From the sequence record KU726251.1: DNA of 64,000 bases, one strand, 5' to 3'. A model generated the notes under the pieces. It searched no databases and had not been told where the DNA came from. It was given only the letters and a program-made list of their open reading frames with translations. The position numbers and the translations under genes are program-made. Shown in pieces: positions 13,605-25,568 of the stretch. Each line of letters opens with the position of its first letter. Positions within the stretch are counted from its first letter, which is position 1.

Positions 13605-14276
13605 TTAAATGCCGAGAGATTCGGACAATGTTTTTAATCCAGTGTAATCGCGCTTTTCAGCTAACTCACGGATTTGGCGTTTGTTATCTGCCATTGCTGA
13701 GTGCAACACTTGGTCGCGTGCAACAATAGCGCCCAACAACGCTTTACATTGGTCTACTGTAAACGGACTGTGCTTAGTATTCAGCGTATCGAGCCAGTAT
13801 TCTGGTGCGGTATCTGCCTGAATGTATTGACCGAGGATGGTACGCGACGATTCATCGGCTTGAAAGTGACTACCTTCAAACTCGATATAACCATGACGCT
13901 CATCTTCGTAGCGGTGGTCAAGTTCCAACAGCATCTTCTGCACGTCTTCGTAAATGTAACGTGCGGTAGATTTTAGATTCCCGCGAATTTCGTCGAGGTC
14001 AATCTCCAGCACATTAGCAATAAACTCTTTCGTGCGTTTCAATGTGAAGTTAGCTTCAATCTCCGACATCTCATACAGCTTCATGCGTGCCAGGGCTTCT
14101 TTATCAGACATCCCTTCGATGAGATGATAATGGAGCAGAGCGCAAAAGCCTGTACGGCCCTGATCCTGCGCACCGATTCGTTCCATGAAATTACCGTGGC
14201 GATCAATCGGCAAATCACGCTGGAAATAACGGGCGCGGATCTCTTCGTTCGTTAAGCTTTTGTCAGTAACAGACAT
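13605..14276 (-). CDS. DUF4376-domain protein (tail-fibre-assembly-associated)
   Basis: C-terminal FQADESSRTIL...YWLDTLN...FTVDQCKALLGAI matches the DUF4376 pattern FQ.D..S....W...dN....T..el..L. Confidence 0.6.
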   Translation of the reverse strand: MSVTDKSLTNEEIRARYFQRDLPIDRHGNFMERIGAQDQGRTGFCALLHYHLIEGMSDKEALARMKLYEMSEIEANFTLKRTKEFIANVLEIDLDEIRGNLKSTARYIYEDVQKMLLELDHRYEDERHGYIEFEGSHFQADESSRTILGQYIQADTAPEYWLDTLNTKHSPFTVDQCKALLGAIVARDQVLHSAMADNKRQIRELAEKRDYTGLKTLSESLGI

Positions 14277-14818
14277 TCGTCCTCCTCAATCAGGCCAAGT
14301 TCTAACAACAAACCGAAGTCCAGCATCTGGAAGTCCTGATCGAGGTTACCGGCCCACAACAGAGAAATGTTGTGTTGCTCTTCTTCTTCCAACTGCGGGA
14401 GCAGGTGTTCTTCGAAGATTTGACGCTCTGTGTAATAAGCGTCAACCGGGTTATTGGAGCGTAAGTTACGAATACGCATCCGCGGGAAAGACAAGCCCAA
14501 AGCCACTAAACTTTCAGGACTGGCTTCATCAATAGAGTGACGTAGCAGTTCGATTTTGTGGCGTGGGTATGCAAGCAGTCGCTTCTCAAAGCCAGGGTTG
14601 CGCTTTTCGATTTCCGCGACAGACTCGTGTCCTTTCTCAACGCAGTAGACCGGGATCATCACATTCAGCCCGTATTTAATCAACAGGCTTTGGATTTCAT
14701 CAGTGAAGTCTTCCCCTGCCACAATTGCGTGCACATTGTACAGCTTGCTTTTGCGCAGGAAGCGATCGACCAAGTGCAGTTTACGCTTCGTAAAATTGTG
14801 AATCAGTATTGACTTCAT
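14252..14818 (-). CDS. Hypothetical protein in the radical SAM cluster (188 aa)
   Basis: ATG 14818 overlaps the end of the rSAM gene. Its stop overlaps the start of the DUF4376 gene. Confidence 0.6.
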   Translation of the reverse strand: MKSILIHNFTKRKLHLVDRFLRKSKLYNVHAIVAGEDFTDEIQSLLIKYGLNVMIPVYCVEKGHESVAEIEKRNPGFEKRLLAYPRHKIELLRHSIDEASPESLVALGLSFPRMRIRNLRSNNPVDAYYTERQIFEEHLLPQLEEEEQHNISLLWAGNLDQDFQMLDFGLLLELGLIEEDECLLLTKA

Positions 14819-16109
14819 TCTGGGCTCCGTTTTGTAATTTTTCTGCTTCAGCACGTTGGCGTACACAACGTGAACAATAGCACATGGATTTATCATGCAA
14901 ATCTGATGCGCGGGTCGTACCAGTTTTCTGATACCAATATTCCGCCGCCATCAGCTTCGCAGTAGTCCAACCACACTGACGACGCTCGGCGTGATACGCT
15001 TTACGGTCTTCCAGTGTACCTTCACCGTTTTCGTACGATGCTGCTGCGCAGCTACCGCAACTGTGTTTCATCGGACACCCTAAACAGGTTTCTGGGTAGT
15101 TGGTGTACTGTGTTTGAATCTCTTCTAACAACTTACCACCGTCCAGGCTCACAAACTCACGACCGACCAGTTCTGCTACAGCAGAACGGGAAGTTACCGT
15201 GGACATGAAACGGTTACAACCGTAAATCTTGCGATCAAAGCCGAGACAGGTCATGTGCGTCAACGTACCGCAGTACGGTTTCAGGCGTTCTGGGTCGAGA
15301 CGAACAGAGTCGTCATGTAAGAGTTTGTCACGCCAATCCGGGTCCCAAGTTGCCATAAAGTTCAGGCCATCCGGGATGATGTGTGTAATCGTGTTACGCG
15401 GGTTGGTGTGCAGACCCTTCTCAATCCAGTAGTCCATCACGTCCATCATCTGGTTCGCGATATCCAACGCCATATGGCGCGGTAGGATATCTTCGTACGT
15501 TACGTTACCAGAAATGGTACCACCGCCGGACATGTCAATTAACGATTTCATGCTGGCGGCATAGTGCGGCAATGTATCGATCGTAAACGTCGCCTTTACG
15601 CCCAGTTCAGCGATGCCAACACTCTTCAGATAATTGTAACCGCGTACCGCAGCTTCGTACGACCCTTCACGCGTCGTGGTAAAGATACGATATTTGTCAT
15701 GGACTTCAGGTAAACCATCGATGGAGACCCCAATAGACAGTTTGTCTTTCCAGCGCTCGATAATTTCTTTGTTCAGCGGACGGTCCAGAAGTGTACCGTT
15801 CGTGGAGATACTGAACATATACGGGCGATTGTGTTCTGCGCATAACTTCTCTGCGGTTTCAAAGGCCGCCAAAAGAAGTTTAGGCTGCATGAACGGCTCA
15901 CCACCGATGATATCGATGATGACCTCAACGTTCGGGATATCTTTATCACGCTCGAAACAAGCGTGGATAAAATCAATCACGTCTGCTACTTTGTTGTTAC
16001 GAGGATATTTACGCTCGTAGCAGTATTCGCAGTCCAGGTTACATGACAGGTTAGTCACAACCTGATACGTGCGTGGTGTGTACTGGATTTGCTGTTCGCT
16101 GTTACTCAT
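14781..16109 (-). CDS. Radical SAM/SPASM peptide maturase, Cys-Xaa3-repeat target type
   Basis: CNLDCEYC (CxxxCxxC), IGGEPF, STNG, SIDG. SPASM-type Cys set YCG..TC..GCNRF..CLGC..SCGSC..QC with a tail ending KLMAAEYWYQK. Confidence 0.9.
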   Translation of the reverse strand: MSNSEQQIQYTPRTYQVVTNLSCNLDCEYCYERKYPRNNKVADVIDFIHACFERDKDIPNVEVIIDIIGGEPFMQPKLLLAAFETAEKLCAEHNRPYMFSISTNGTLLDRPLNKEIIERWKDKLSIGVSIDGLPEVHDKYRIFTTTREGSYEAAVRGYNYLKSVGIAELGVKATFTIDTLPHYAASMKSLIDMSGGGTISGNVTYEDILPRHMALDIANQMMDVMDYWIEKGLHTNPRNTITHIIPDGLNFMATWDPDWRDKLLHDDSVRLDPERLKPYCGTLTHMTCLGFDRKIYGCNRFMSTVTSRSAVAELVGREFVSLDGGKLLEEIQTQYTNYPETCLGCPMKHSCGSCAAASYENGEGTLEDRKAYHAERRQCGWTTAKLMAAEYWYQKTGTTRASDLHDKSMCYCSRCVRQRAEAEKLQNGAQNEVNTDSQFYEA

Positions 16110-17016
16110 TGTTCGCCGCCCGTTTACGCTTAGCAGAAATTACACGGTTGATGTAGTTATACGCATCAACGCCGATAGAACGCGCCAGGCGATTACAGCC
16201 GACTTCCAATATCTCTGGGGCGTTCTGAATTTGCTCCTGCGTACCGTCGGCGTTAAGCCACAGCACTTCACTGCACGTGTTGCACTCGGTATCGAACATT
16301 TTACTGATCGCAAGCCCACATTCAGAATCGTTCTGCATGTTAAGGCGTTCGATATTGTCGAGTATTTTCCAATACCCGTACATGAAGTTCATGACGTGGT
16401 CTGGCGATAACGGTTTCGGCATCATCGCATCAAACAACAACGACACACCACCTGGACGGTAATGATAGATTGCTCGGTGCAGCTCGATGAAATCTTCGTA
16501 CCAGCGTTTATCACCTAACTGGTCACGCGTCATCACACCCCAGGTGTAATAGTTGTCCAGCTCGTACAGCACTTCCAGCGCTTCATGATTACCACCGTTT
16601 ACAAAGTTCATAAACGGACGTTCCGACTTCTTGTAGCCGTCAATGGACACAAAGATAAGGTCGAACTGTTTCAGCAACGGCAGATGTGATTTACGCATCT
16701 TTAAACCGTTGGTGTACATGTGATGACGGAGGTTCGGATGAGACTCCTTTAACTCGTTCACGAAGTCTTCAATCTTGCGCTGCGCTAACAGCGGCTCACC
16801 GCCCGTCCAATGAATCTCACCGATATCCGGATTCTTCTCTAAAATCGAGAGAATCTCTTCACGTTGAAACTCACGAGAAGTATCTTCTCTATCCATGTAA
16901 TAAGCCCCTCCACAGAAGCTACAGTCTAAGTTACACTTAGAAGTTGCGACAACCGACAGAATTGACGGTTTGTCGTACAGTTCAGACGAGATCCTGGATT
17001 CTACTTGATCTGTCAT
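16102..17016 (-). CDS. Second radical SAM enzyme (short C-terminal Cys cluster)
   Basis: CNLDCSFC, TGGEPLL, YTNG, SIDG. C-terminal CNTC...GCNRL. Confidence 0.85.
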   Translation of the reverse strand: MTDQVESRISSELYDKPSILSVVATSKCNLDCSFCGGAYYMDREDTSREFQREEILSILEKNPDIGEIHWTGGEPLLAQRKIEDFVNELKESHPNLRHHMYTNGLKMRKSHLPLLKQFDLIFVSIDGYKKSERPFMNFVNGGNHEALEVLYELDNYYTWGVMTRDQLGDKRWYEDFIELHRAIYHYRPGGVSLLFDAMMPKPLSPDHVMNFMYGYWKILDNIERLNMQNDSECGLAISKMFDTECNTCSEVLWLNADGTQEQIQNAPEILEVGCNRLARSIGVDAYNYINRVISAKRKRAANNE

Positions 17017-17037
17017 TGCAGGTTGCTCCAGTATTTT

Positions 17038-17925
17038 TTAAATATAATCAATGGCGAATAAAGGATCTTCGTCTACATTAGCGCCGGGCACCAGTAACAT
17101 CGGGTCGTGATAGGCAGCTAAAATTTTGTTCAGGTCGGCGTGTCTTTCGTTCAAGCGTTTCAAATCGGCCAACGTAACCGAACGACTACGAATCTCAGAA
17201 ACAGCTTCTGCTTCTTCTTTCGTTAAATCCACCTTCGTTAAGAGGAAGCTTACCAGCTTACTCAAATCCGCTTCTGTCGCCGGGTAATCCCCATATCGGG
17301 TTTGAACCAGGTGTTGCATCCACGGCTTACGAATACGTTTGGTGATTTCAAAATCGTCAGTCAACGCATACCAGACAGAACGCTTTTTATCCCACACGAA
17401 CTTATAGCTATACGCCATCATGTCCGCTAAACGGGTGATGCCGAGTTCTTTATATCCCTCGATATCGATGTACGGTTCGGTGTCGAAATACGTTTCCGTA
17501 TCGGCAGGTACCAGTACAAAGTAGTAAGGGAACGAGCCCAGATAGTCCGGACTCCACCAACGGCGCGCCATCGGTTTTGCTTCGAGTTCGTCAAACGGTG
17601 TAAACATCAGTTCTAAATCGACACTGTTGTTCAGAATCCCTTCACTGAAGAAATACTTACCGTCAACCAACACGCCGCGAGAGTTACCATCGCCGTTAAA
17701 GATAACGATGGCCTCTGCAACCATATCACGGATCTTAAACGTATTTTCTACGGTGTAGTTCTTCTTGTCGGTCAAGAAGCGACCACGAACCTTTGGCCAC
17801 TCACCAGGAATCTGTGCAATCAGTCTGACTTTGTCAGCGAGGTGTGCACGCACCGAATCTGGGGAAGATAGATGCAGCGGGTGGTTGAATGTGGTTTTAT
17901 ACGCAAGATGCAAATCGTTTTTCAT
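17038..17925 (-). CDS. Hypothetical protein in the radical SAM cluster (295 aa)
   Basis: Long ORF with RBS ggag between the precursors and the rSAM genes. No recognisable motif. Confidence 0.65.
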   Translation of the reverse strand: MKNDLHLAYKTTFNHPLHLSSPDSVRAHLADKVRLIAQIPGEWPKVRGRFLTDKKNYTVENTFKIRDMVAEAIVIFNGDGNSRGVLVDGKYFFSEGILNNSVDLELMFTPFDELEAKPMARRWWSPDYLGSFPYYFVLVPADTETYFDTEPYIDIEGYKELGITRLADMMAYSYKFVWDKKRSVWYALTDDFEITKRIRKPWMQHLVQTRYGDYPATEADLSKLVSFLLTKVDLTKEEAEAVSEIRSRSVTLADLKRLNERHADLNKILAAYHDPMLLVPGANVDEDPLFAIDYI

Positions 17926-17947
17926 TTAATACTCCGAACGTTTTCTG

Positions 17948-18154
17948 TTATCGATTCCCCGCTCCACGGCTACAGCTTCCGCTGCAGGACCAGCTACACC
18001 CACCATTACAGTTATAGTGAGAAAGCGGTAAGCCAGCCAGGTTATTTGTGGTCGACACGGTGCCCTGGTTAGCGATATAGTTGTTTGCCTGTGCGGTTGT
18101 AATGTAACCTTCTGCCGTAACGAGACGGTTTCGAATAGTCTTGAGACTGATCAC
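17948..18154 (-). CDS. Cys-Xaa3-repeat peptide 3 (short, 4 Cys)
   Basis: MISLKTIRNRL...SHYNCNGGCSWSCSGSCSRG. Leader homologous to peptides 1 and 2. RBS ggagg. Confidence 0.8.
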   Translation of the reverse strand: MISLKTIRNRLVTAEGYITTAQANNYIANQGTVSTTNNLAGLPLSHYNCNGGCSWSCSGSCSRGAGNR

Positions 18155-18169
18155 ATAAGCCTCCGTCGG

Positions 18170-18574
18170 TTAGGAGTTAGGACCTGAACAACCACCAGAG
18201 CACGCACCTGAGCAGTTTGCGGAGCAGGATTTACCACAACCCCCAGAACAGCTGCCTGTGCACGTGCCGCTACAACCACCAGAGCACGAAGAGCTACAGC
18301 CCGTGCAGCTGCTGCTACAGCCTGATACACAGTTTGCCGAACAAGTCGACCCACAACCGCCCGTAGCAGACCCAGTACATCCGCCAGAACAACTCGAGCA
18401 ACTAAAAGAGCATGTTCCACCACAGTCATAGTGCGAACGACCTTGACCTGCGAACAAGTCAGCGTTATTCGTAGCTTTATTGCGAATGTAGTTTTGCACA
18501 TTCGTGGTATTCTTTAGAGCGTTTGCATCGATCGTGTTTAATCGGTTATTCAGTTCTTTTAATCCAATTGCCAT
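18170..18574 (-). CDS. Cys-Xaa3-repeat peptide 2 (20 Cys), putative rSAM substrate
   Basis: About 50-aa leader, then CGGTCSFSCSSCSGGC... repeats in a Ser/Gly/Thr-rich background. Confidence 0.9.
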   Translation of the reverse strand: MAIGLKELNNRLNTIDANALKNTTNVQNYIRNKATNNADLFAGQGRSHYDCGGTCSFSCSSCSGGCTGSATGGCGSTCSANCVSGCSSSCTGCSSSCSGGCSGTCTGSCSGGCGKSCSANCSGACSGGCSGPNS

Positions 18575-18584
18575 TTAATCCCCC

Positions 18585-18976
18585 TTAGCGACCTGAACAG
18601 CCGCCGGAGCAGGCCCCGGAACAACTGGAAGAACATGAGCCACCGCAACCACCTGTGCAGTTACCGGTACAGCTACTACTGCAACCACCAGAACAACCAG
18701 AGCAACCAGAACAGTTACCGCCACACGTCGAAGAACAGCTACCGATACAAGAAGCAGAACAGCTTCCTGAACAGCTCGAACAGCCATGCGAGCAACCGTT
18801 AGAGCACGTCCAAGAACATGTCCCGCCGCAATCTAGCTGTGTTTTCGTCCAACCCCCAAATCGGTCTGCCGCGTTATGGCTTTAGAGGCCACTTGCGCGT
18901 CGATACGGGGGCCCGTCGCCATGTTAGCTTCGACTATCTGGACGCGGTTTCTGACGTCTTTAATAGATATCGCCAT
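18585..18976 (-). CDS. Cys-Xaa3-repeat peptide 1 (21 Cys), split by a 1-nt frameshift near 18876; not in the ORF track
   Basis: Hand translation: MAISIKDVRNRVQIVEANMATGPRIDAQVASKA / (H)NAADRFGGWTKTQLDCGGTCSWTCSNGCSHGCSSCSGSCSASCIGSCSSTCGGNCSGCSGCSGGCSSSCTGNCTGGCGGSCSSSCSGACSGGCSGR*. RBS aagga. Confidence 0.85.
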
Positions 18977-18998
18977 TACGCTTCCTTAAAAAGTAGAA

Positions 18999-19033
18999 CG
19001 AGCGGACTATGTCCATAAACATAGTCCGGCTCG
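18999..19033 (-). promoter_or_regulatory. Intergenic RNA hairpin (attenuator, processing or stability element)
   Basis: On the - strand gagc-c-ggactatgt-ttatgg-acatagtcc-gctc followed by gttctacttttt, just upstream of the peptide 1 RBS. Confidence 0.55.
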
Positions 19034-19041
19034 TAAACAAG

Positions 19042-20244
19042 TTACTTAGTACCCGCTTCAGCTTGAACATCGTCGCGCGAGGTGAGGTTGTTGTTAACGT
19101 GAACAGCAGCCTGCACAACACCGCCATACTGTTTATGGAGGTAATTCGGGTGTGGGTTATCCGCAGCCGCATGGTTCGCCAGATTCTGGTTTGCCTGCGA
19201 AATTGCGTTGGTGTTGTTTACAACCTGAGTTTTAAGACTGTTGATTTGTCCTTGCAGGTTATCAATTTGCTGTTGGAAGTCTTTGCCCTGATTCTCAAGA
19301 TCCGTGACACGCTGATTTGTTTCATTCAGCGCAGACTGAAGATCGTTAACCTTCTTCTGTAATTGCAACACCAGAGAATTAAGGTTAGCTAATGCTAACG
19401 ACATTTTCTGGTAATTTTGAGCAACTACATTAAGCTGGTCGTTCCACGCGGCTAACGAAGCCACAATTGCATCGATGCGTTGTCCCAACGCCGTGTCTGC
19501 TGCTCTTAAGTCGCCGATATCTCTGATAGTGGCGTCAATGGCAGTCTGTACACTTTGAATCAAAGCACGAATCTCCGTCTCCGTCAGGCCATTAACCTGA
19601 TGAATGTCGAGATTGTGTACGTTACCTTCGGCGTTGATGTGGGTATTTAAGGCATCGAGGAAGTCGTTTTTCAGACCGTCCAGAATACCTTTAATTTCTT
19701 CCAGCTGTACTGCAGAGCCGGAGTTAATCGCATCTTTAATCCCCGCGAGCACGGTAATGATATACTCAAAACCGTAGATATCGCCAAGGTCTTTATACGT
19801 CGGTGCGGACGGGAACGTATCGGGCACGTTTCGAAGATCCTTGAAGTCCACCACACGGTCTTCAATTTTCAACGACGCAATCGCTTGTCGGATGCCTTCG
19901 ACGTTCGCGGACTGAAAACCACCAACGACTTGCGCAGAGACTTCGATATCAGTAGGAATGGCCGAGTTAGTTACCACCACACCCATGACCACTTCGCGGT
20001 TCTTGGTCATTTTCTGATATGCAGTATGTGCAAAAATCAGCTCGTAGTCTGTACCGCGTTTGTACGGGTAGACACCTGGTTTATTCGCAGCCGCCAAGCG
20101 GAAGGTATCCGCGTAGAAAGCTCCGTCAGGAAATGCAAAAGCCCGGTTAACTTTACCAGAACCTAACGTAATACGCCGCGTAACGGCGTTCGACGTTAAT
20201 GTCCCGGTAAGGTCAAGCGGGTACTGATAAATGATTTCGGCCAT
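19042..20244 (-). CDS. Baseplate/fibre-family virion protein with long coiled coil (400 aa)
   Basis: YPLDLTG...N.V N-terminal domain shared with the three upstream giants. HINAEGNVH and DNPHP motifs. Heptad-rich segment. ATG 20244 after ggag. Confidence 0.75.
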   Translation of the reverse strand: MAEIIYQYPLDLTGTLTSNAVTRRITLGSGKVNRAFAFPDGAFYADTFRLAAANKPGVYPYKRGTDYELIFAHTAYQKMTKNREVVMGVVVTNSAIPTDIEVSAQVVGGFQSANVEGIRQAIASLKIEDRVVDFKDLRNVPDTFPSAPTYKDLGDIYGFEYIITVLAGIKDAINSGSAVQLEEIKGILDGLKNDFLDALNTHINAEGNVHNLDIHQVNGLTETEIRALIQSVQTAIDATIRDIGDLRAADTALGQRIDAIVASLAAWNDQLNVVAQNYQKMSLALANLNSLVLQLQKKVNDLQSALNETNQRVTDLENQGKDFQQQIDNLQGQINSLKTQVVNNTNAISQANQNLANHAAADNPHPNYLHKQYGGVVQAAVHVNNNLTSRDDVQAEAGTK

Positions 20245-20291
20245 TGCCAAACTCCTTTGATTGGGGCTTCCTTGCCCCATAGCGCCATCTG

Positions 20292-23200
20292 TTAGGTACG
20301 GAACATAAGATTGACCTGGATAACATCAGGCTGTTGACGTCCTCTCTCGTTCACCCAATCATGCGCAATCGTTAACGTAAGATTATCGCCATCCCACGAC
20401 ATGATCGGCGGTGGGAATAAACCCTGAGCACCTGTGGTAACAACCGGGATTGCACCTGCCACATTCGTAAACGTATAGCTACGACTGTTCAGAACAACCG
20501 GTGTGCCGTGGGTCTCTCCCGGATGTGGTAAGATTTGAATCTTACTATCCGAGAGATCGGTGGTGATTGGTAGCCCCCCAGCGTCCGTGAAAAGCCAAGA
20601 GCAAATATGCTGGTTAGCAGTTTCGAGCGCTGAAGAACTTACCGCCGCGACAAATGTAAAGGTGCACGGCACGCCTGCTGGCAGAGAGTGCTGTTTGTGG
20701 TGCACGGTGTGTGGTGACGGCAATAACACTTCTGGATTTTCATCAATGTTAACATCCGTACCTTCCGCTTCGACGTTGTAGAAAAAGCCATCCACCGCCT
20801 CCCATGGGGCAACGTGGACATTAAAGGTCGTTTCTACTCCCGGTGTACCTGGGACGACGAATTTACTTTGCACCACCACCATCAGGTTTGTTGAGGTCGG
20901 AGCGAAAGCGGGCGTTGGAATACCTACCCACTCCATACCCAATGATGTCGCTTCACTGTTCTCATCGGCCGTTACCGTCGCAATTGTTGTAGGATGTTTC
21001 CAAAACGCCCCCGACTTGTTTGCCTGAGTAAACGCCGGCAAAGTTTTCAAGCCTTCGAAACGTTTAGACACCATCGCTTTACCGCGACGCTGTGCGTCAG
21101 ATACAGTATAAAGCAACTGACTATCCAGATAGCCTTTCGTAGCATCGACTGACAAAGGACCCATCGCTTCTTTACGCAATGGTGCCAGTCTGCCCGTTGC
21201 TGCATCCCTTCCCACTTCCACATCATGCTTATTCTCAACTGCCGCATGTTCCAACAGCTGTTTTACCGCCCCCAATCGCTTAGCATGGTCGACGTTAGTC
21301 TCGACGACTCGCGACGAGCCCGTTTTAACATACCCGATGTAGAGTTCCGTTTCGGTGTCTGGATGTTGAACCACGTCCATTACGTACTTCGGTGTACCAT
21401 TTTCTACCTTGGCGTGCAGGTAAAATGTCCGGTTCTGATGGTTTGTTGGAAATGCTTCGCTGAGGTCAATATACCACGTAGGCAGCTTATAAGTGTTCGA
21501 GCCGAAACGCAGGTTAACTTCCTCAGTCACATATACCAGCCAACCTTCGGCTGTTTCCACACCAGCAATGACGACCGATTCAGTCGGGCCGCTAAAATTA
21601 GGAGTCGCGACAAAATCTCTCGACGACATTGCGATACCACCACAATAGACGTAGTCGAGAGATGAGTTGTGTAGCATCACCTGATCACGATGAGCCAGAT
21701 AAGCTGGGCTGACTGGAGTGTGTGATGGTGCCATGCGTCCAATGCCGCGCGGGGCAGAAGAACGCGTCCAGGTACCATTAGACAGCGTAAGACCGACACC
21801 GTAGTTAAGCGCACCCAAGTCGCCAATTTGGCGCAAGGTTAACGTGTGTGGAAGATACAACCCGAACTGCGTACCATCTACCGACACCATGGTAGGTTGT
21901 CCCGGCCGGCGTGTTTTTCCTCCCGTTATCTCTCCCAACGTAGCATAGTTCAAGCCGTAGTCGAGGTTGTTATAGAAGTCAAACAGTGCCAATATCGCTG
22001 CGGGGAATGTTACCTGCCCGTTGCTGATTGTTGGTTTCAGTGTAAAGTAGTAGATATCTAACAAGTTAACATTGTTCACAGTACGTGTACATGCTACTTG
22101 TGCTAATGTGAGCGGTGTGGCCGTTCCGATGCCGATGAACCAAACGGAAAACAATGCCTTTCCTGCGTTATTTGCAGCAAGGATAAATTCCGAAGCATAA
22201 CCATTCGCAGCGCCTGCCGGTGCTCCGTCGATGATCATCTGCTTCATCTTATCCCATTCAGCTTGTGACAGCGTCAATCGATCGGCATGAATCGTGAAAG
22301 TGCCGGAAACGTTGTGGTAAGGGAATGTTTCTGGTCCTGTGCAATACCAGCCGTTTAACTCTGTACCAGGCGACGCCGGTGTAACAATGTGGCACATCTG
22401 CGACAGATTCTCATACGTGATAGAATCTACTACACGACGATTGTTAGTTGGGCCATACCCCGCCTTACCTGAGTAAGTGGTGTTCGGATCAAACTCAACT
22501 TCAATTGCCAAGCGGGAACGCGGCTGTGACAACCAGATAAGTCTGGAATTCGCTCCCAGAGTCAGCGGATACGCCATACCCAGCTCGTAGATAGAACCAC
22601 GTCCTTGGTTTAACATTACCGCACTAAAACTTCTGGCAGTGAAGTTGTAGTCGCACGACAGGTACTCGTACCAACTCACACCGTCATCTAACGTTGTAAT
22701 CGTGACATAAGGCATTAGGTCGCGATCGCCTGCATGTCCTTGCGAAACGATATACTTGTCTTGCGATGTTGCAAAGGTTCGGTTATTAGCTTGACCTTCG
22801 CCCCACTTCCGGCTCGGAATCCCAATCTCAGCGCCGCCGTTATAACGAACCGTGGTAAGATCGGCCACGATAGGGAATCGATCGGCACCTTCCAGCGTTA
22901 CCGTCATTGAACTGCAATCAACAACAAAGCTTGACACCCATTGTTTAAAGTTAATAGTTTGCCCTGTAGTAGAAGCAAACCAGACTGTTGGCGTTAAACC
23001 AACACGAAAGTTCAGCCCATCCACAGCAATCGCGTGATTACATTCCGGACCATGGACGAAATTTCGCGCACTATTCCACTTCGCCGATGCGTCTGCGTAG
23101 ATTTGTGTTACTGGCGCTACCAACACATCTGTATCAGAACGTTTCTGACCCTGACGCAAGTAGATATTATCTCCCGACGTTAACATCCCACCTGTTAACA

Positions 23201-25474
23201 CATCCGCCACAAACGTGTTGCTACCACCCAGATTAAGTTCGTTGAGTGCGATGCTACGCATACTCACGAAATAGTCACCGGAGGTAAGGACAGTACGGAG
23301 CAGATAAACCCGATCGTTGCAAACGATCAAATCGTTTGTTGACGGATCGGCAACCCATGGTGCGGTTGTAATCACACCGGCCGCGTTACCATTTCGGTAA
23401 TCGCCCAAGTAAACTTTAACAACACGATGATGTTTTGCATGGTCAATGGTGCCGTCAAAGATGACCAGATAATACGCATAGTCACTGCCTAAGCAGATCA
23501 TTGCATCTGTACCGGTAATCAGAATAGCAACCAGATTCACCCCAGGATACGCCGACATTCCAGCGGGGTGATAACGTACGGACGTCTGCTGCATATTTTC
23601 CAGCGTATTGCTTGGCGACACATCAGCATAGGCGTAATAGATAGCCAGTCACCTGGCGGGTTCCCGTTGGAACCATTGCGCAACGAGTAAACCTTACCAG
23701 CCTCGTAACGCGCCAGTCCTTTTTGCCAGGTTTGGTTTTTGGTGTACCCTTCGTAGTTCCCCTGGACAGGTATAGGCAAGAAGTTATTGTTGCCGTACGA
23801 TGATCCGCCAACGGTCCATGCTGGCAACAACGTAGCAATCTTGTCGTTCAGTGTACCGATCTTCTGTTCGAGCAAGAAACCCTGGCGGGCAGTAACCATC
23901 TTATCTGTTGTGGTGTCAATAGCATCCCACAATTTAGCCAAACCTGTAACAGACGTGGATGCGTACGGTACGTTATCGAGATCAGCAATGGTGTGGGTGT
24001 GTGTTGAGAGTGCCTTGCCTGATAGCACGGTGCGCAACGCATTAGTAACCGGTTTCTCCAGCGGTCCGGTATTGTTCATCTTCTCAATACCGAAATCCGA
24101 CGCGGTTAATGTTAAATGCATTTGACCGTTTTCGTCTAACACAAACCCTTTACCATTGACCGTATACGTGTCGTCCACATATCCGTCTAGTTTGTTCTTC
24201 AAGTCAGTAACAGCTTTTTGGGAAATCGCTGTGGACGCTGCAGCGGACGCCGAAAGGTTAGTAATCGCAAACAAACCCTGCACAGTTGTGGTTGCTGCAG
24301 GCAGTTCCGCATTCATGTAAACTTTGTTTGTTTCTTTACCAGAGCCGTAAATCTTCAACGTGTCGCTGGACTTGAAGTAGGCGTTTGCTGGAAGTATCTT
24401 CACCGAGGTCAAGTACATCTTAACCATATCCGGTGTAACGAGATAGACGCTGTTATACACAGGCGCAAGCACACCTGCATCATAAGCGCCCCACTTGTCA
24501 CCTGCTTTACCCGAGTGAACCCAAAGCGTGTTCAGACCAGCACTGAACTCCGTAGCGATACCCGGTTCGTTGTTATCCTGGTCAGCTTTTAATACCAGCG
24601 GTTTTGTCGAGGTGATGATGAACTTCTCACCCTTCATGCTGATAACGTGACCAGACGTTGTTTGGAACGTAATCGCGTCGTTATTCAGAACACGCATACG
24701 GCCCAGTAAATCACCCAGGGTATTATCCAGAAGCATGTCAACGTGTTTCTGTTGGATGCCGCTGGTAGACATTAACGTCACTAGCTCTGCCAGGGTACGT
24801 CCGAATGCCTTAGTCGCATCTACGGCTTTGCCGAGTACCGGGAGAGCGCCAATGTCACCGCAGGTGTAACCATGTGCATTTTTAATCAGGTGGTGTTGAT
24901 ACATTTCGTCATCAAACACCTGCTTACCGTTCTGATAAATCAAATCGGTAACTTCGGCAAAAGCCTCATCCAGCTCGTGGGCGCGCTCTAAAATACCCAG
25001 ACGGATATCTTCCAACGCCTTTACGATTTCATCGCGAAGAATCGCTTCTTCGAGGTCTTTTGGCGGGTCGATTGGCGAGATAATCGGCGGATATTTCATC
25101 AGCTCAGACCAATCGCAGTTACGCGGGTCTTTCATATCTGTCTTAACCAGATACTTGCCGATTTCAGAAGCAGGGATGCGATACTGTCGACCAACCGACA
25201 GTAACTCGTATTCTACCTCTGTGGCGTTCAGCAGCATTATGCTGCCGTATATTGCATCGTTCTCAGCCTCGGCTAATTCCTGGAAGTAATGTCCTAAGAA
25301 ATAATCAAGACCTTCTATTAACTTGCGTTTAGTTCCGGTTGTTTTATCGGTAACGGTTAACGTTAACCCGATGCGATAGAACGGTGCTTCGACGGGAATG
25401 ACCGCCGAATAACGGTTCGGGTAAGTAGCGGTACTGAGCGTACCGTTAAACTGCGCCGCATCTTCTCTCGGCAT
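20292..25474 (-). CDS. Long tail fibre/baseplate protein (~1730 aa), split by a 1-nt frameshift at ~23645
   Basis: ORFs 23537..25519 and 20292..23621 join as GDW-AIYYAYADVSPSN if one G is restored. Fibre repeats (ATTTVQG, HTHTIADL, ASTSVTGLAKL). ATG 25474 after aggag. Confidence 0.75.
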
Positions 25475-25504
25475 TGCAAACACTCCTAATCTGTAATAAA
25501 ACGG

Positions 25505-25568
25505 AGACCGCCCTCCCAATAACGGAAGGGCGGTTTACCTACGGACTACCCGCCCGTAGGCAGTCCGT
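25505..25568 (-). promoter_or_regulatory. Two tandem intergenic hairpins within the operon
   Basis: On the - strand acggactgcc-...-gggtagtccgt and accgcccttcc-gttatt-gggagggcggt, with G-U pairs favouring the - strand RNA. Confidence 0.55.

Follow-up and report, generated by a model that had tools for sequence, protein, structure and literature searches.

Proteins in which cysteine recurs every fourth residue (CXXX repeats) are already known to pair with radical S-adenosylmethionine (rSAM) enzymes from curated hidden Markov models (HMMs), namely TIGR04114 ('Cys-rich repeat') and TIGR04115, together with PF27846 (tSAM_targ_Cxxx_rpt); TIGR04114 and TIGR04115 were defined through comparative genomics alone. 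Here we describe three paralogous minus-strand genes with such repeats, P1, P2 and P3, in a 64,000-nucleotide (nt) stretch of record KU726251.1 (the window), which comes from the giant Salmonella phage SEGD1. Their products belong to one phage family of unknown function, PHROG 6085, and the genes lie beside those of a gp165-like protein and two rSAM enzymes, rSAM2 and rSAM1 (Table 1). With a probability of roughly 55%, P1–P3 are fibre-type proteins cross-linked by enzymes, with an N-terminus that serves attachment or assembly and is not cleaved off. A literature search found no paper that deals with the chemistry, the link to tail fibres, the trio of genes or the fixed slot numbers described below.

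The locus resembles the TIGR04114/TIGR04115 pair in that CXXX substrates stand beside a SPASM-type rSAM enzyme. TIGR04115 was the top NCBIfam match of rSAM1 (125.6 bits), with the PapB HMM (NF047865, 113.6 bits) as co-best; both fall well short of the curated cutoffs (350 and 340 bits), and the tail-fibre-linked relatives of rSAM1 reached 130–157 bits with TIGR04115. Similarly, P2 and P3 scored 17.1 and 19.6 bits with TIGR04114, for which the cutoff is 20. The architecture of TIGR04115, a CxxxCxxC motif and a seven-Cys SPASM region beside a CXXX-repeat protein, is present here: in rSAM1 it comprises C23/C27/C30 and the invariant, SPASM-like C280, C298, C342, C345, C351, C354 and C379, and the enzyme adjoins a CXXX-repeat protein in all cassettes. 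A Pfam search at E ≤ 0.01 gave no match for the peptides of the SEGD1 window, and PF27846 is on record for two relatives, P0004 and the 568-aa protein of L017.

The thioether synthases CteB (SCIFF/thermocellin, PDB 5WGG/5WHY) and PapB (freyrasin ranthipeptide) have the rSAM core and the seven-Cys SPASM region in common with rSAM1, and their substrates are likewise Cys-rich with short-period motifs. The rSAM1 profile matched CteB (5WGG) over nearly the full length with an E value of 8.7e-37. This alignment began at CteB residue 101, indicating that rSAM1 is without the N-terminal recognition element (RRE) of CteB for ribosomally made, post-translationally modified peptides (RiPPs). The cores of P1–P3 also differ from PapB substrates, as they contain no Cys-X3-Asp/Glu motif. 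Moreover, a second rSAM enzyme and gp165-like partners are present here, and the substrate can be a fibre protein of 250–570 aa.

A protein-sized substrate has been reported for the CrpA/CrpB/CrpC system of Methanococcus voltae, where a SPASM rSAM enzyme puts ranthionine (thioether) crosslinks on a large Cys-repeat protein, and the paralogous substrates have a conserved N-terminal region of ~47 residues in common (PMC13692751). Both features are paralleled by P1–P3, and the enzyme has an active-site profile like that of PapB. Nevertheless, the Crp enzyme belongs to another rSAM family (TIGR04463, 57.6 bits to rSAM1), the Crp repeats are of 17 or 34 residues with CxxQ/D, CrpC has an RRE, and its setting is neither phage nor tail fibre. 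The His-Xaa-Ser system (HxsA-D) combines a SPASM rSAM enzyme (HxsB-like) and a smaller one (HxsC-like) with a short-period repeat peptide. HxsC was the top NCBIfam match of the rSAM2 of Deferribacter, and HxsB was among the matches of rSAM1; however, the scores were far under the cutoffs, the repeat here is Cys-based with a period of 4, and an equivalent of HxsD was not recognised. As for rSAM2, it shares only the core with rSAM1, its three C-terminal Cys were invariant among homologues, and the nearest peptide-modifying rSAM enzymes were 8VPO, CteB, ChlB, SkfB and YydG.

The repeat module and its relatives

Significant family-HMM matches over the length of the proteins placed P1, P2 and P3 in PHROG 6085 (for P3, the copy of Salmonella phage SPN3US was used). 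Each chain consists of ~30 N-terminal residues, predicted to form two short helices, followed by a junction and then C-terminal repeats. The junction has the consensus ...NNxDLxGQ...(Y/L)xCxGxCS(W/F)xCS and carries residues that were invariant or nearly so in the alignment (Table 1). The repeat unit was found to be C-(S/T 76%)-(G/S 74%)-(S/G/T 87%); acidic residues made up ~1% or less of the cores, and aromatic residues were nearly absent outside the junction. A first-pass annotation, made from the sequence alone, had given the first repeats as (L/Y)(D/N)C(G/N)G(T/G)CS(W/F)(S/T)CS with a single aromatic residue per Cys core, and had noted Ala in one Cys slot of P2 (TGSATGG) as well as CxxC slips. 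These readings were correct, and the features recurred across the SPN3US-like giant phages and their wider relatives. The junction aromatic was also kept among homologs, being W in nearly all of 51 family members, Y once, and F in P2 of Seoulvirus and of metagenomic relatives (L025/L026).

All three genes were present in Seoulvirus, Machinavirus, Erskinevirus and further metagenomic giant phages. Across the SPN3US-like giant phages compared, the Cys counts were invariant (21 in P3, 20 plus the Ala slot in P2, 4 in P1), the first Cys stood at residue 47–51, and most CxxC slips kept their positions. The slots therefore number 21/21/4, and the 'graded core lengths' supposed in the first-pass annotation were a misreading. 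In the L033-35 lineage the Ala slot of P2 holds Cys. Stand-alone trios of two long chains and one short chain were also found in L015 (rSAM1 47% identical), L019 (53%) and L033-35, the short chain of L015 and L019 stopping one to three residues past CSW. Within each phage the two long chains had equal slot numbers, as in L015 (21/21), apart from L019 (15/16). Both long chains had 21 slots in four trio lineages, including L015 with its distant rSAM1, and 28 slots were counted in three unrelated fibres to which the module is fused (L014/L020, L017/L036 and L040). Both 21 and 28 are multiples of 7, for which an explanation was not found. Searching with a degenerate DNA pattern of the junction gave chance matches only. 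It was also observed that a gene for an Acb2/Tad1-like sponge against the cyclic-oligonucleotide-based anti-phage signalling system (CBASS) lies just upstream of the L019 trio (L019 2877-3098).

Viral contigs and the prophage-like regions of Deferribacter abyssi, Desulfoluna butyratoxydans, Thalassospiraceae and Synergistaceae were found to carry homologues of rSAM1 with 32–39% identity. Each homologue neighbours an rSAM2 (E 2e-14) and, where detected, a gp165-like protein (E 1e-9), and gp165-like homologues adjoin the rSAM pair in most cassettes. Directly upstream lies a protein of 247–568 aa which has the junction and CXXX repeats as its C-terminus; that of Deferribacter reads ...KATNADQLGGQAGSYYRCSDCSWTCSSSCTGSC.... 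The fused proteins measure 302 aa in Deferribacter, 257 aa in Desulfoluna, 475 aa in Synergistaceae, and 568, 312, ~250 and 271 aa in viral contigs. PHROG 6085 was matched by seven of the eight (E 1e-5 to 1e-14), no match being obtained for the 271-aa protein of L018. Since the matches ran from profile position ~8–35 onward, the homology begins just past the first helix of the small proteins. Tail-fibre or minor-tail scores were obtained for three of the eight fused N-termini, namely that of L040 with a minor-tail PHROG (E 1.2e-7) and, weakly, those of L018 and L021 with tail fibres (E 4e-4 and 8e-4). Hallmarks of such proteins were seen in some N-termini, including HDxRYYTExE 'phage tail repeat-like' units, collagen-like GPAGADG and long coiled coils, and the neighbours in the fused cassettes include GpJ-like, T7-tail-like, Peptidase_S74 and T4 gp13 proteins.

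A different arrangement was noticed in Thalassospiraceae (L016 4017-4256, L022, L023), where a 79-aa CXXX peptide with a 14-residue N-terminus and without the junction aromatic begins 1 nt beyond the stop codon of a T7-tail-like fibre gene (607 aa). This represents either a third architecture or a fibre tip fused by frameshifting.

The N-terminal part of the small proteins was modelled for P2 with AlphaFold2 (AF2) from the 34-sequence alignment. Helices were predicted at residues 5–19, 23–33 and 46–50, with a local confidence score (pLDDT) of ~73 falling to 55. The first-pass annotation had described all three N-termini as coiled coils. The heptad hydrophobic positions that it listed are as stated, and its K..(R/N)NR motif is correct and conserved in SPN3US-like phages and wider relatives; the coil itself was not upheld. 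Coiled coils are recognised by at least three to four heptads in a row with hydrophobic a/d positions, and by oligomer formation. The a/d contrast of the single sequences was not beyond chance when compared with shuffles (p 0.21 for P2, p 0.36 for P1), although the hydrophobic columns of the helix were conserved in the alignment despite these values. As modelled, the N-terminus is one amphipathic helix of ~15 residues or ~2 heptads, from which a coiled coil cannot be diagnosed. The three N-termini were found to co-vary within each phage lineage.

A proposed cross-linked fibre element and competing explanations

From the homology, gene association, conservation and enzyme class that were observed, we infer a chemistry, a virion location and an oligomeric state for these proteins. 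The best reading of the sequence comparisons is that the junction and repeats form a C-terminal tail-fibre element, which would be matured with the gp165-like protein, rSAM2 and rSAM1. A phage tail-fibre identity is suggested by the module being common to fibre-type proteins and by its location among tail genes. In the proposed mechanism, rSAM1 and rSAM2 would convert the repeat Cys into covalent crosslinks, of which thioethers are the likeliest, judging by the similarity of the enzymes and the CrpC/CrpA precedent (PMC13692751). The rSAM pair appears to be without its own peptide-recognition domain, and the gp165-like protein may serve that role. Crosslinking would turn a low-complexity tail into a rigid and stable fibre segment. 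In SPN3US-like phages the module would have become three stand-alone chains, the N-terminal helices of which may serve attachment or co-assembly. The recurrence of trios with matched long chains is compatible with a hetero-oligomer without demonstrating it. The junction is likely to be a nucleation or recognition site, because this part alone is retained by the short paralog and the fused fibres have it too. The helix is absent from the fused versions, so that maturation is evidently independent of it. As the helix is dispensable in this respect, and neither a protease nor an exporter nor an RRE was found in the cassette, it is unlikely that the N-terminus is a disposable leader; the first-pass annotation had doubted such a leader as well, and was probably right, which is indirectly supported by the fusion of the module to tail-fibre-type proteins.

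The confident AF2 model of the gp165-like protein (pLDDT 88.5, predicted template modelling score 0.85) showed a beta-rich domain and a helical hairpin. Fold searches with Foldseek against PDB, VIA-wide and BFVD gave no informative match, with only its own orthologue found in PDB/BFVD; the best VIA hit (Z 5.8) covered only the C-terminal helical hairpin and was within noise, and a protein atlas returned nothing above 0.84 and no lead. Judging by the model, it is possibly an undescribed fold that accompanies the rSAM pair.

Several observations weigh against a cross-linked fibre element. The gp165-like model has no recognisable RRE or chaperone fold. The shortfall of rSAM1 against the PapB and TIGR04115 cutoffs is large, and an Asp/Glu acceptor as in PapB substrates is found in none of the P1–P3 cores. 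The AF2 monomer of P2 shows no core fold (core pLDDT <40). No recognisable tail genes adjoin the L019 trio. Finally, in SPN3US and SEGD1 the annotation of P1–P3 is missing or in the wrong frame, so that proteomic searches were blind to them and the published proteomes could not have found them; gp161-167 are not mentioned in the SPN3US proteome papers.

Three other explanations were considered. It is unlikely that P1–P3 are canonical RiPP precursors, whose ~48 N-terminal residues would be leaders to be cleaved and whose cross-linked cores would be released as an antimicrobial, signal or anti-defence peptide. The layout of a leader-like part and a Cys-rich core, the multiple precursors and the two RiPP-type rSAM enzymes would suit such a pathway, as would the short N-terminus of the Thalassospiraceae peptide and the position of the L019 trio among non-structural genes. 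All three chains carry, ~8 residues ahead of the first Cys, a conserved (F/L)(A/G)G that resembles a double-glycine site, but the (A/G)G motif belongs to the junction and is also present in the fused fibres. There, the module is the C-terminus of much longer proteins, several with tail-fibre hallmarks, and no leader is seen. Furthermore, canonical pathways have an RRE-recognised leader and a nearby protease or exporter, whereas domain and HMM searches of the nine cassette genes found no RRE, no peptidase or protease, and no transporter or exporter domain such as a C39 transporter; the slot number, conserved at exactly 21, points to a structural ruler instead. To a similar degree improbable is a fibre tip that binds metal or iron-sulfur clusters, with the Cys coordinating metal along a trimeric fibre and the rSAM enzymes performing epimerisation, Cys/Ser oxidation, methylation or loading. 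Repeats that bind metal are known from the fibre tips of T4, the Cys are regularly spaced with small side chains between them, and rSAM1 is also like the anaerobic sulfatase maturase, while rSAM2 is like the epimerase YydG and MoaA. However, the nearest characterised relatives of rSAM1 are the thioether synthases CteB and PapB, and a tolerated Ala slot in P2 and a short paralog with 2–4 Cys are easier to reconcile with serial local crosslinks than with a cooperative metal array.

The least probable of the three is the complete model of the first-pass annotation, in which a hetero-oligomeric coiled coil carries cores of graded length and the second rSAM enzyme makes a separate crosslink at W/F-x-C. 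The amphipathic helix conserved in all three chains, the co-variation of the N-termini per lineage, the recurrence of two long chains plus a short one in L015, L019 and L033-35, the equal slot numbers of the long chains within each phage and the high conservation of the aromatic speak for parts of it. But a helix of ~2 heptads whose periodicity is not significant in single sequences does not favour the coil, the core lengths are not graded, and the fused versions are single chains. rSAM2 with all of its conserved Cys is kept in three cassette types without the junction aromatic (L016/L023, L022 and L018), which speaks against rSAM2 making a crosslink dedicated to the aromatic, and the W/F-x-C crosslink is therefore unlikely.

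A more specific form of the cross-linked fibre element would be a stapled CXXX-repeat rod, an undescribed tail-fibre element built as a hetero-oligomer of two 21-slot chains and a short 'cap', joined at the Trp junction and quantised in length (21/28); this form we regard as tentative and rather doubtful. Were the cross-linked fibre element true, phages would use radical SAM 'RiPP' chemistry to build part of the host-recognition apparatus of the virion, and the reach of enzymatic thioether (or related) crosslinking would extend beyond small natural products into the structural proteins of viruses. Three unannotated genes, together with rSAM1, rSAM2 and gp165, would likewise gain a function in SPN3US and the Erwinia giant phages. 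SPN3US has a genetic system, which makes the case directly testable there.

Gene run, record errors and annotation

SEGD1, which belongs to the SPN3US species, and SPN3US are phiKZ-related giant myoviruses of the genus Seoulvirus; bases 14700-20300 of the window matched SEGD1 (KU726251) at 100% and SPN3US at 99.4% identity. The Cys-repeat genes sit within a minus-strand run of tail genes (Table 1), the order of which in SPN3US numbering is gp168 (1727 aa), gp167, the three small genes, gp165 (295 aa), gp164 (rSAM), gp163 (rSAM), gp162 and gp161 (DUF4376). The first of these is a protein of the tail that resembles phiKZ gp131, at the baseplate's outer edge (PMC5105663). The gp162-like protein occurs only in cassettes whose small Cys-repeat proteins are stand-alone. 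Upstream of each of P1, P2 and P3 a Shine-Dalgarno-like sequence was found (GGAGG for P1), and a promoter and terminator scan found nothing on the coding strand.

Table 1. Features of the Cys-repeat locus in the window (strand and evidence as found)
Feature	Position	Strand	Remark
P3, first Cys-repeat gene, ~130 aa intact, 21 Cys	18585..18976	-	PHROG 6085, E 7.5e-41 (SPN3US copy)
P2, 134 aa, 20 Cys + one conserved Ala slot (21 slots), Phe at junction	18170..18574	-	PHROG 6085, E 3e-41
P1, 68-aa short paralog, GTG start, 4 Cys, ends ...CSRGAGNR	17948..18154	-	PHROG 6085, E 2.7e-24
P3 junction LDCGGTCSWTCS	18801..18836	-	conserved in alignment
P2 junction YDCGGTCSFSCS	18395..18430	-	34-sequence alignment: C51, C55, S56 invariant; G43, G53, W57, S60 near-invariant
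P1 junction YNCNGGCSWSCS	17981..18016	-	conserved in alignment
P2 N-terminal amphipathic helix, residues 5-19 (predicted)	18518..18562	-	AF2; conserved hydrophobic columns
P3 N-terminal amphipathic helix (equivalent to that of P2)	18920-18967	-	
P1 N-terminal amphipathic helix (equivalent to that of P2)	18101-18145	-	
gp167 homologue, virion structural protein with coiled-coil region	19042..20280	-	directly upstream of P3
gp165-like protein, 295 aa, PHROG 8030	17038..17925	-	conserved cassette member
rSAM2, 304 aa	16102..17016	-	CxxxCxxC; three conserved C-terminal Cys (C245, C248, C274)
rSAM1, 442 aa, radical SAM/SPASM	14781..16109	-	7 conserved C-terminal Cys
gp162-like protein	14252..14896	-	PHROG 7988
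DUF4376 protein (SPN3US gp161)	13605..14276	-	closes the minus-strand run

The three minus-strand paralogs pointed out in the first-pass annotation are real, except that P3 is not one open reading frame (ORF) in the SEGD1 window. In this record a 1-nt deletion in a C3 run after + strand 18877, as seen in the alignment to SPN3US, parts the first 33 codons from the Cys core and leaves a leader ORF at 18833-18976 and, at 18585-18877, the core frame. The missing base was present in four of four public runs (two DNA runs as well as two RNA libraries, read from their contigs), and P3 was intact in all 11 GenBank relatives examined, indicating that the break is private to the SEGD1 record. A programmed -1 frameshift in P3 was rejected, the apparent 'shift' being this deletion.

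The annotated SEGD1_169, SEGD1_170 and SPN3US gp166 were found to be wrong-frame, Ala/Val-rich ORFs across the Cys repeats. Such ORFs at 18151-18501 and 18575-18787 (-) are what GenBank annotates, while the real genes are largely unannotated, and in some relatives opposite-strand ORFs are annotated over the Cys-repeat genes. This amounts to a systematic annotation failure, in which gene callers prefer wrong-frame Ala/Val-rich ORFs over Cys-repeat genes. A peptide word search found few relatives, probably because gene callers skip these ORFs.

In the transcriptomic library X17, mean depth was 3154 for a contig over the P3 core, P2, P1 and gp165 (17900-18895) and 251 (~12-fold below) for the one that covers the fibre gene upstream, the break between the two falling near 18878-18895. 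This contrast is a hint of strong expression of the Cys-repeat genes, as contig depths cannot prove transcription or its level. It was also noticed that the gp168 homologue (20292-25519, -) is split into ORFs of 660 and 1109 aa, whereas SPN3US gp168 is a single 1727-aa protein. Compared with SPN3US, one nt is missing after 23644 without compensation, which accounts for the split and is a second frameshift in the SEGD1 record.

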